Assembly: GCF_023055435.1 (NCBI RefSeq)
Contig: NW_025964223.1
Location: 44,020,001 to 44,084,000, forward strand
Source of the DNA: Haliotis rufescens
Taxonomy: Eukaryota
DNA: 64,000 nucleotides
Direction of reading: 5' to 3'
Part shown: one piece after another, positions 8,084 to 9,429 of the stretch
How positions within the stretch are numbered: the stretch's first letter is position 1
Layout of the letters: every line of letters starts with the position of its first letter
Notes under the pieces: model-generated
What the model saw: only the letters and a program-made list of their open reading frames with translations
Database searches by the model: none
Told to the model about the DNA's origin: nothing
Translations under genes and position numbers: made by a program

Positions 8084-9429
8084 TTATGTGTGGGAGTCTG
8101 CGTATCGCTCCAATGCCACAATCTCCTGAGCCTCAAGAACGTGGTTACCTATTGAGAATCATTGTCAATCATTTGATACATATAATACATTCGGGAAGGG
8201 CAAAGAAATCGTCTTTGGCAGTAATCCTCGGTTCTCTTGTCTCTTAACAGTGGATCCAGTAACAATAGTATGCATACACAAACAACCTACCATTTGAATC
8301 AGCAAAGTGCATAAGTTCACGAGCGCCCAGTTGTCCGTACTCTGCTTTCAGTTCGGCCATATCAAGCTTCCCATCTCCATTCGAGTCAACATCTTGAACA
8401 CCACGCTTACCCTCCGAATCTATCGTTGCTTCAAGTAGAAGGATAGCGTCAGCTTATGTGTGTTTGTTTGTTTGTTGTTTAACGCCGCACTCAGCAATAT
8501 TCCAGCTATATGACGGCGGTCTGTAAATAATCGAGTCGGGACCAGACAATCATTGACATCATGAGCATCGATTGGGATACGATGACATGCATCAGACTAG
8601 TCAGTGAGCCTGACCACCCGATCCCGTTTGTCGCCTTTTACGACAAGCATGGGTGCTGAAAACCCGGAATCGTCAGGGCTTTTCTGCACAGTGGCAACAA
8701 TCATGGCTATATATTGTGCAACATATTTTTATTGAGACGTCACTTCATGTTTGGGTAACCAGTACTGTAGAGGGGCTAGTTTATAACACGTTTACAATGA
8801 TATTTGTTTAACTGCGTGGTGATCACAAATGTTCAAAAAATAAATTCTCACTATTTGAATGTAAAAATGTACATGTACCTGCAAAATGGAATGCCACGTT
8901 TGTTCTACGGAATAGGTTGTATTCCTCGTGGAATTTAATTATTTATTCAGAATTCTGACTATACGTGAAAGAACGACGGCTACGATCAGCTATTGAGATC
9001 CTTTCTGGCGACATGACCATAATTGGAGTGAGGTATGGTTTTACGCCACTTTCAGCAATATTCCAGCAATATCTCGGCGGGGGACACCTGAAATGGGCTT
9101 CACACATTGTACCCAATGGAACTAATGTAGAAGAGGAGGTCCTGCTTTGAACGTACGCCTGAACATACGAAGCATGTTATACCTAGGAATGCGAAATACG
9201 GATCATTCATCTGATAACATGTAAAATTTATAATGTCTTGACAACAAACATTCTTTGATAGACATTCAAATTCTTAGATATTCGGACATGGATATGTGCC
9301 TAAGTTAATATTACTTCCAAGCAGCGTTGTCCCAAGTATCTTCAGGAGCTTGAGAATTGCACCCCAAAAAGCATCAGTCGGCTGGACCACAACCCCAAGC
9401 AGCAGGAGAGCAAAGATGAAGCTTCTCAT
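8084..9429 (-). CDS. Secreted precursor: signal peptide + amphipathic (antimicrobial/cytolytic-like) peptide + G-KR + two EF-hands (105 aa, 3 coding exons)
   Basis: Exons 9429-9315 (115 nt, donor gtaata), 8428-8291 (138 nt, acceptor ttctacttgaag, donor gtaggt) and 8148-8084 (65 nt, acceptor ttctcaatag). Both introns are phase 1; total 318 nt, open. Protein MRSFIFALLLLGVVVQPTDA|FWGAILKLLKILGTTLLGTTIDSE-GKR-GVQDVDSNGDGKLDMAELKAEYGQLGARELMHFADSNGNHVLEAQEIVALERYADSHT*. EF loops DSNGDGKLDMAE and DSNGNHVLEAQE; the second is assembled across intron 2. An alternative in-frame acceptor 9 nt downstream would give LLG-NSE-GKR. Confidence 0.85.
8458..8660 (-). mobile_element. SINE family A in intron 1 of the peptide/EF-hand gene
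   Basis: Family A sequence with (GTTT)n on the plus strand. Confidence 0.8.

Follow-up and report, generated by a model that had tools for sequence, protein, structure and literature searches.

The DNA stretch analyzed here (the window) comprises 64,000 nucleotides (nt) of the red abalone genome (Haliotis rufescens, contig NW_025964223.1, positions 44,020,001 to 44,084,000). On its minus strand, between positions 9429 and 8084, it carries LOC124140009, an intact gene which is already annotated and uncharacterized. This gene codes for a protein of 105 amino acids (aa), which has a signal peptide, a Cys-free stretch of 24 residues, a G-K-R site and a pair of EF-hands. We discuss the protein as a candidate precursor of an amidated defense peptide. 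The gene is one of four tandem copies, and it is part of a large gastropod superfamily.

Gene structure and database identity

The coding region consists of three minus-strand exons (9429-9315, 8428-8291 and 8148-8084), which add up to 115 + 138 + 65 = 318 nt, corresponding to 105 aa. The exons and introns are as follows (a slash marks the splice junction).

9429-9315 (minus strand): coding exon 1; ATG at 9429, donor GT at 9314-9313, exon end GGA A/GT
8429-9314 (minus strand): intron 1; 886 nt, phase 1, GT-AG, holding two fragments that resemble short interspersed nuclear elements (SINE-like repeats)
8428-8291 (minus strand): coding exon 2; acceptor AG at 8430-8429, donor GT at 8290-8289, exon start AG/CA and exon end AAT G/GT
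8149-8290 (minus strand): intron 2; 142 nt, phase 1, GT-AG
8148-8084 (minus strand): coding exon 3; acceptor AG at 8150-8149, exon start AG/GT, stop codon TAA at 8086-8084

When each exon is translated in its own frame, exon 1 gives MRSFIFALLLLGVVVQPTDAFWGAILKLLKILGTTLLG, exon 2 gives TIDSEGKRGVQDVDSNGDGKLDMAELKAEYGQLGARELMHFADSN and exon 3 gives NHVLEAQEIVALERYADSHT, which is followed by the stop codon. A reading made from the letters of the window (the sequence-only reading) had joined these exons into a frame of 105 aa. The phase-1 GT-AG junctions and the frame were found at the same positions on the minus strand, and the spliced model is identical at every residue to a database protein (P0001), RefSeq XP_046363298.2. 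Thus, an independent annotation pipeline arrived at the same model. That reading had also called the gene hidden. This part has to be withdrawn, because RefSeq annotates the gene and models all four tandem copies. The record is named "uncharacterized protein LOC124140009 [Haliotis rufescens]". P0001 was retrieved by searching with the open frame of exon 2, with scoring limited to the exon part. The exons were searched separately and unjoined, and full-length analyses are based on P0001. The structure is beyond chance, since it recurs in four tandem copies, with all splice sites kept, and in dozens of paralogs and orthologs.

Domains of the predicted precursor

The protein can be divided into the following elements.

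9370-9429 (minus strand): signal peptide, residues 1-20 (MRSFIFALLLLGVVVQPTDA), with n, h and c regions, T at -3 and A at -1
9315-9369 (minus strand): first 18 residues of the predicted mature peptide (FWGAILKLLKILGTTLLG) and first base of T39, from the translation
8412-8428 (minus strand): last six residues of the predicted peptide (T-T-I-D-S-E), from the translation
8403-8411 (minus strand): G-K-R, a dibasic convertase site with glycine as amide donor, from the translation and from family conservation
8352-8387 (minus strand): EF-hand loop 1 (DSNGDGKLDMAE), with canonical ligands at positions 1, 3, 5, 9 and 12 and Gly at position 6
8291-8300 (minus strand): last bases of exon 2, which open EF-hand loop 2 (D-S-N plus base 1 of the G85 codon)
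8084-8148 (minus strand): remainder of loop 2 (to E93, 8123), exiting helix and stop codon, in coding exon 3

The sequence-only reading had proposed a signal peptide, a linear Cys-free peptide, a G-K-R site ahead of the EF-hands and an acidic C-terminal domain with two EF-hands. Each of these elements can be read in the protein. The signal peptide has the expected n, h and c regions and cleavage-site residues, and it aligns with those of superfamily members. A transmembrane anchor was considered for the hydrophobic segment behind it and was rejected, as this segment is 18 residues long, includes two Lys and comes after a signal peptide that is cleavable.

The predicted 24-mer between signal cleavage and G-K-R has no Cys, no Arg and a net side-chain charge of 0. 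The mean Eisenberg hydrophobicity of its first 18 residues is 0.56. It had been claimed that G3, K7, K10 and T14 fall on one helical face, and on a helical wheel with 100 degrees per residue they do lie within 180-240 degrees. The peptide is hydrophobic, weakly amphipathic and non-cationic. As the 24-mer is net neutral and one paralog has two prolines in the variable core, the picture of a cationic amphipathic antimicrobial peptide (AMP) suits this gene far less well than the rest of the superfamily. AlphaFold predicts residues 18-37 as a helix with low confidence, and confidence is likewise low for the linker (residues 33-46). A phmmer search of PDB with the exon 1 product gave no meaningful match.

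Among 18 aligned family members from Haliotis and Gigantopelta (alignment A3), G45, K46 and R47 are each kept in at least 90%, so that the site is near-invariant. Positions N55, G58, D61, E64, A74, A81 and D82 are invariant in this alignment. The spacing from G-K-R to EF-hand loop 1 is 5-6 residues throughout the family and 5 in the window protein.

The tail beyond G-K-R has 58 aa with 12 D/E and 4 K/R (net charge -8). In both of its loops, oxygen ligands occupy positions 1, 3, 5 and 12 and a hydrophobic residue is at position 8, as is usual for EF-hands. Loop 2 (DSNGNHVLEAQE) has the full ligand set, with His replacing the usual Gly at position 6. Pfam scores for P0001 are 25.3 bits for EF-hand_1 (PF00036; cutoff 25.4) and 19.0 bits for the EF-hand_7 pair (PF13499; residues 51-95; cutoff 30). 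With exon 2 alone, EF-hand matches are below threshold. When the family profile was compared with PDB, calmodulin-type chains were matched at E = 3e-9. AlphaFold2, run with the 18-sequence family alignment, modeled the EF-hand domain (residues 48-104) with a predicted local distance difference test (pLDDT) score of 81-88. Among the best Foldseek matches in PDB, all are EF-hand lobes, for example those of polcalcin and calmodulin. The polcalcin match has a template-modeling (TM) score of 0.67 to the target, a probability of ~1.0 and E = 0.04, the latter being expected for a domain of 58 residues.

The predicted fold is a paired helix-loop-helix, in which EF-hand 1 has a short entering helix that is preceded by an unmodeled segment. 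The Pfam alignment of EF-hand 1 begins at profile position 7. As G-K-R is only five residues ahead of loop 1, EF-hand 1 would lack a normal entering helix after cleavage. A complex prediction for residues 18-47 with residues 48-105 and two calcium ions scored 0.02, which neither favors nor disfavors binding.

Variation among tandem copies

Searching the genome revealed four gene copies, identical in their EF-hand exons, on the contig that carries the window (C445:44,000,662, 44,008,786, 44,017,213 and 44,028,292, the last being the window copy). They are spaced 8-11 kb apart and correspond in RefSeq to LOC124140009 (window), LOC124140080, LOC124140079 and LOC124140081. All four have intact frames. 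They share the signal peptide and the EF-hand domain but differ in the peptide core, which reads ...AILKLLKILG... in the window copy and ...AILKILMKFG..., ...AILRILTKFG... and ...AILNLPKTPG... in the other three. The variable sites among the four copies are distributed as follows.

Signal peptide: 1 of 60 sites variable
Mature region in exon 1: 10 of 55
Intron 1: 45 of 868
Exon 2: 1 of 138
Intron 2: 8 of 142
Exon 3: 0 of 65

When pooled, the signal peptide and the EF-hand exons have 2 variable sites in 263, and the introns have 53 in 1010 (5%). The mature region is 4-fold more variable than the introns (Fisher p = 9e-4), and the remaining coding sequence is ~7-fold less variable than the introns (p = 5e-4). 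Variation in the mature region is nearly confined to a short hot spot.

9334-9351 (minus strand): hypervariable hot spot, codons 27-32 (peptide residues 7-12), with 9 of 18 nt sites variable

This hot spot holds 9 of the 10 variable sites of the mature region, and the encoded residue changes between copies in all six codons. The peptide flanks, FWGAIL and GTTLLGTTIDSE, do not vary among the tandem copies. The ortholog from the black abalone (Haliotis cracherodii; P0002, XP_071115286.1) is intact and has the same layout. Differences affect 9 of the 24 residues of its peptide and 8 of the 81 residues elsewhere (p = 0.003). Taken together, this conservation pattern is the signature of an effector peptide on a conserved scaffold, and not that of a decaying gene. 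A variable peptide combined with a conserved KR site and EF-hand part had been anticipated by the sequence-only reading, and it is seen in paralogs and orthologs alike.

The same data bear on an alternative, in which the functional product is a small secreted calcium-binding EF-hand protein of mucus, hemolymph or the shell-forming mantle. The hydrophobic segment would then be a disposable pro-piece or linker under weak constraint, or it would stay attached. It is true that the EF-hand part is the strongly conserved one and that both loops retain complete sets of calcium ligands. However, the peptide outpaces the introns to a degree that exceeds relaxed constraint, its flanks are invariant among the copies, and G-K-R is retained in the four intact copies and in the ortholog. 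Cleavage at this site, five residues before loop 1, would leave EF-hand 1 without a full entering helix. Two further points fit with a calcium-binding product: unlike its relatives, the peptide of this subfamily is no longer cationic, and some relatives lack G-K-R (see below). The combination of a conserved carrier with a hypervariable effector is, in turn, the pattern of myticalin and other defense-peptide precursors (PMC5577615). On balance, we consider a calcium-binding product unlikely and give preference to a precursor that releases the peptide.

A fifth copy of the subfamily (L005/L015) is found at 41.53 Mb of the same contig (C445:41,526,923 region) and is 93% identical. Its exon 1 has gained 1 nt by insertion and shows a gap of 6 nt, which puts the peptide out of frame; the donor context is altered as well. 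No RefSeq protein was found for this copy. It is probably a pseudogene. Upstream of it is a minisatellite (L015:3713-4339) with a period of 67 or 134 nt, which appeared as repeated weak tblastn matches.

The wider gastropod superfamily

(a) Judging from sequence comparison, the window gene belongs to an unnamed superfamily with ~50-60 genes per abalone genome. The EF-hand exon recurs ~50 times in the H. rufescens genome at E < 1e-12, and there are additional weaker matches. These exons occur as tandem clusters on at least five contigs, are preceded by G-K-R or G-R, and end at the same phase-1 position inside loop 2. For nine paralogous loci from five genomic clusters, the open frame starts a few residues before G-K-R (G-R in two of them, S-E-R in L005) and ends at ...D-x-(N/Q/D)-G, inside loop 2. 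Two phase-1 introns, one a few residues before G-K-R and the other in the Gly codon of loop 2, are found superfamily-wide, and the window gene has both.

(b) A profile search of 1.84 billion representatives, together with a profile word search, retrieved short proteins that share this layout, grouped into 36 clusters. They are from H. rufescens, Haliotis rubra, Haliotis asinina, H. cracherodii and the vent snail Gigantopelta aegis. Word searches with the single window protein reached only its own subfamily, and profile searches were needed to reach the superfamily. HMMER profile matches are mostly long multi-EF-hand proteins; the informative ones are short, with a single matching stretch. A protein atlas search returned generic EF-hand leads only, all below 0.85. 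In the databases, family members are called "uncharacterized" or carry the automatic name "calcium-binding protein 5-like", and literature searches turned up no paper that describes the family or its gene identifiers. This agrees with the sequence-only reading, which had not assigned the protein to a named family.

(c) Superfamily members start with a signal peptide, which is followed by a peptide free of Cys, by the near-invariant G-K-R and finally by an EF-hand pair that is acidic. The window gene fits this layout. Sister members such as LOC124136079 and LOC125373214, which have the order "Arg-rich peptide - GKR - EF-hand", share with the window gene a similar signal peptide, the same two phase-1 introns and the organization in tandem arrays. 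Most sister members have a Trp within the first two residues past the predicted cleavage site. For 33 other members that were scored, the peptides are Cys-free with a net charge of +2 to +18 (+7 or more in 31 of them, +2 or +3 in the other two), and the tails have a net charge of -9 to -22. Most sister peptides are rich in Arg and follow the pattern (W/LF)RRRRRRWLRIRG..., and their C-terminal end is hydrophobic. The window subfamily, with its hydrophobic and net-neutral peptide, is an outlier.

(d) The EF-hand domain of the window protein is 32-40% identical to those of sister members. In an unrooted EF-hand tree (38 rows, 63 columns), the window subfamily is a clade with 100/100 support, apart from the other Haliotis and Gigantopelta members. 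Fragments from ENA/NCBI (P0167 and P0186), short or truncated sequences (P0044, P0083 and P0183) and near-duplicates (P0154-P0157 and P0181) were omitted from the tree. One of the sister members omitted, P0167, is a complete open reading frame (ORF) of 141 aa on an ENA contig of 502 nt. This contig is too short for introns, which suggests that it represents a spliced transcript of a sister gene.

(e) The G-K-R site is the classical processing and amidation signal of neuropeptides. The amidated peptide might thus be a signaling molecule, that is, a neuropeptide, a hormone-like factor or a waterborne pheromone, and the precursor is small and secreted, which would be in line with this. Ligands are, however, normally conserved between paralogs and species, whereas the peptide core is the part that changes fastest here, and the gene family has expanded to dozens of tandem copies. 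Neither the Arg-rich peptides of the relatives, with charges of +7 to +18, nor a hydrophobic helix-prone core of 18 residues is typical for receptor ligands. We regard a signaling function as quite improbable and retain defense as the preferred role of the peptide.

(f) Two other clusters were encountered. At least seven weaker EF-hand-exon matches (E ~1e-7) are located at C445:44,157,117-44,230,259, which is 73-146 kb past the end of the window. This cluster is the LFRRRRRRRW... subfamily (LOC124140002, LOC124140075 and others), so that two very different subfamilies are found within 200 kb. At C146:7,485,000-7,642,000, there is a regular array of the sister subfamily TIFFQGKRNVDNLDTNMDG... 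with a period of ~13 kb. On one strand, the EF-hand exons are intact, and between them lie inverted copies, each of which has one in-frame TAA. The inverted copies are probably pseudogenes which were duplicated along with the unit.

Comparison with known peptide families

Within its gastropod family, which is undescribed, the window gene represents a new variant with a non-cationic peptide. The closest published analogs are two peptide families from mussels, the myticalins and the mytimycins.

(a) Myticalins are linear cationic AMPs from Mytilus. They are encoded by a multigene family. Their signal peptide is conserved, the linear peptide is hypervariable and Cys-free, a Gly followed by a dibasic site is predicted to lead to C-terminal amidation, and the C-terminal extension is anionic (PMC5577615). 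All of these attributes are shared with the abalone family. Myticalin genes have a first exon consisting of 5' untranslated region (5' UTR) only, an intron that ends right at the ATG, and a phase-1 intron after the peptide exon (PMC5577615). The window gene would have the same layout, if its putative 5' exon is included (see below). It differs by having one extra coding exon and by encoding G-K-R in the exon that follows the peptide exon. Myticalin peptides are rich in Pro, Arg and Tyr, with a pI above 11 and more than 10% Arg (PMC5577615). In contrast, the window peptide has 0 Arg and a net charge of 0, and so falls outside this pI/Arg range. The myticalin extension is rich in Asp and Glu, varies in length (35-75 aa) and is moderately conserved (PMC5577615). 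It has no EF-hand, while the abalone extension is a conserved EF-hand pair. Furthermore, one family is from bivalves and the other from gastropods, and there is no evident sequence similarity.

(b) Mytimycins are antifungal peptides from Mytilus. Their precursors have a dibasic site followed by an anionic EF-hand extension that is highly conserved between variants (PMC8004829). This resembles the window precursor, where K46-R47 is followed by the 58-aa domain with a net charge of -8 and two EF loops. Mature mytimycin, however, is Cys-rich and disulfide-stabilized (PMC8004829), whereas the window peptide has no Cys; the two were compared by description. No bivalve protein with a peptide-GKR-EF-hand layout was among the 150 best profile hits. 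By analogy, the Haliotis and Gigantopelta family can be described as combining the myticalin and mytimycin designs.

(c) The sequence-only reading had likened the window peptide to pandinin-2 and ponericin W5, and this possible likeness is confined to a motif of 5-6 residues at the N-terminus. Melittin, pandinin-2 and ponericin W are Cys-free, helix-prone peptides of ~24-26 residues, with a hydrophobic N-terminal stretch of the G-A-(I/V)-L-K-x-L type. Melittin is C-terminally amidated, and arthropod venom cytolysins are made from precursors with an acidic pro-part. These cytolysins are clearly cationic, with a basic cluster at their end, and none of their pro-parts is an EF-hand. The window peptide, in contrast, ends in the acidic T-T-I-D-S-E. 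As the taxa are unrelated, any likeness would be convergent.

Proposed processing and function

(a) According to established secretory-peptide biochemistry, signal peptidase would cut after A20 and a prohormone convertase would cleave after K46-R47. A carboxypeptidase would then trim the Lys and Arg, and peptidylglycine amidating monooxygenase would use G45 to produce a Glu44-amide. The predicted products are FWGAILKLLKILGTTLLGTTIDSE-NH2, with 24 residues, and a separate, calcium-loaded EF-hand domain of 58 residues.

(b) The peptide would be the effector. It is predicted to be helix-prone, very hydrophobic and weakly charged, and it may be membrane-active and serve in defense. Being hydrophobic and nearly uncharged, it would be expected to show general membrane activity and to resemble a general cytolysin more closely than a cationic peptide with selective antibacterial action. 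This cytolysin-like activity is the weakest step of the proposal. The variable face of the peptide would diversify between gene copies.

(c) The EF-hand pair would be the conserved carrier or pro-domain, keeping the precursor soluble and folded, and may help to direct it into granules. It might also offset the charge of the peptide in those sister subfamilies that are strongly cationic. Both the secretory pathway and sea water are calcium-rich. The EF-hand domain would therefore be loaded throughout, and a calcium "switch" as such is unlikely.

(d) In its entirety, this reading as a secreted prepropeptide, which releases an amidated membrane-active defense peptide and has an EF-hand pair as carrier, seems to us about evenly poised between right and wrong. 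A number of observations weigh against it. The net side-chain charge of the 24-mer is 0, and that of the hydrophobic 18-mer is merely +2. The hydrophobic moment of the 18-mer is moderate (0.35, a value attained by 2.8% of shuffles). The peptide has a pLDDT of 44-57 and is not confidently placed in the AlphaFold monomer model. In LOC124140081, the variable core is N-L-P-K-T-P, and its two Pro should break a helix. The peptide of the H. cracherodii ortholog has one Lys only, at position 18. The fifth copy has S-E-R instead of G-K-R, in addition to the frame problem in its exon 1. The sole H. asinina relative of the window subfamily (P0013, XP_067676315.1; 88 aa) also lacks G-K-R and has a degenerate loop 1, with Tyr and Gly at ligand positions; it may be either a mis-modeled exon or a degenerate gene. 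Parts of the subfamily may thus be decaying. Finally, the EF-hand domain of the subfamily is on a very long branch in the tree (2.0 substitutions per site).

(e) A further alternative is that the subfamily as a whole is a recently duplicated, functionally decaying or silent offshoot of a cationic-peptide family, with its variation being due to lost function and not to selection for diversity. The loss of cationic charge, the prolines in the core of one copy, the damaged fifth copy, the degenerate loop 1 in H. asinina and the very long branch can all be viewed in this way. The four tandem copies, however, have intact frames and all splice sites. Their signal and EF-hand exons vary ~7-fold less than the introns (p = 5e-4), which indicates ongoing purifying selection, and the H. 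cracherodii ortholog is intact with the same layout. Decay is thus distinctly unlikely as an explanation for the subfamily, and we keep to the reading as a defense-peptide precursor.

(f) A bolder version of this reading is tentative, and we are inclined to doubt it. Vetigastropod and neomphaline snails would have a large undescribed host-defense superfamily, with a calcium-loaded EF-hand pair as conserved pro-domain instead of an unstructured acidic tail. The array in the window would have switched from an Arg-rich peptide to a neutral, melittin-like cytolysin. Its polar face would be diversifying under positive selection, and the EF-hand carrier would keep the lytic peptide harmless until convertase cleavage.

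(g) Abalone are farmed, and they are endangered in the wild. Their bacterial diseases include withering syndrome and vibriosis. The known antimicrobial-peptide repertoire of abalone is small. If the proposal is correct, 50-60 tandem genes per genome would represent a major unrecognized part of gastropod immunity. The family would also offer new peptide scaffolds, in which a diversifying linear peptide is combined with a conserved EF-hand carrier. It bears, in addition, on the question raised by mytimycin, namely the role of an EF-hand in a defense-peptide precursor. Because the EF-hand module is coupled to many peptides, including an uncharged one, charge neutralization can be separated experimentally from a role in folding, sorting or calcium binding.

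Probable upstream exon, putative promoter and other features

A fourth, non-coding 5' exon very probably exists ~1.5 kb upstream of coding exon 1. The following features flank the coding region.

10996-11002 (minus strand): TATA-like box TATATAT, putative core promoter, present in all four tandem copies
10926-10971 (minus strand): putative non-coding 5' exon; donor GT at 10925-10924, with the 5' end inferred
9430-10925 (minus strand): putative 5' UTR intron, ending in a pyrimidine tract and an AG directly before the ATG
7753-7758 (minus strand): possible poly(A) signal AATAAA (pattern match), the first downstream of the stop codon, ~330 nt into the 3' UTR

The junction cctttttaag/ATG is kept in all four tandem copies. 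The TATATAT is 31 nt upstream of an initiator-like TCAGTC (10973-10968). If this is the start site, the mRNA would begin downstream of the upstream ATGs.

Two paralogs have RefSeq models of 125 aa (P0004 and P0201), with 20 extra N-terminal residues, which map to a small exon found ~1.5 kb upstream of every tandem copy. In the window copy, a 1-nt deletion disrupts this upstream frame. Because of this deletion, and because the initiator is downstream of the ATGs, the 5' exon of the window copy is read as untranslated. The join in P0004 and P0201 (...CASK-MRSF) is out of frame with the visible GT and AG sites (TCA AAA TGA). The extension could reflect either a non-canonical intron or an annotation artifact. 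The 125-aa models were rejected as representing the true N-terminus, since a signal peptide must be N-terminal and the join is not reproducible with GT-AG sites.

The 5' exon of the neighboring tandem paralog LOC124140079 is at the very start of the window (155-96, minus strand) and is nearly identical to the window exon at 10926-10971. Its putative core promoter, with TATA-like and initiator-like motifs, extends up to ~185, and the coding exons of this paralog are located just before the window start.

Positions 46625-46775 of the window are 151 consecutive N, being either an assembly gap or masked. The two interspersed SINE-like fragments in intron 1 are at positions 8455-8700 and 9030-9125. 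The repeat at 8455-8700 has at least eight more copies in the window, with 73-84% identity (e.g., 4152-4351, 11792-11987 and 49586-49795).

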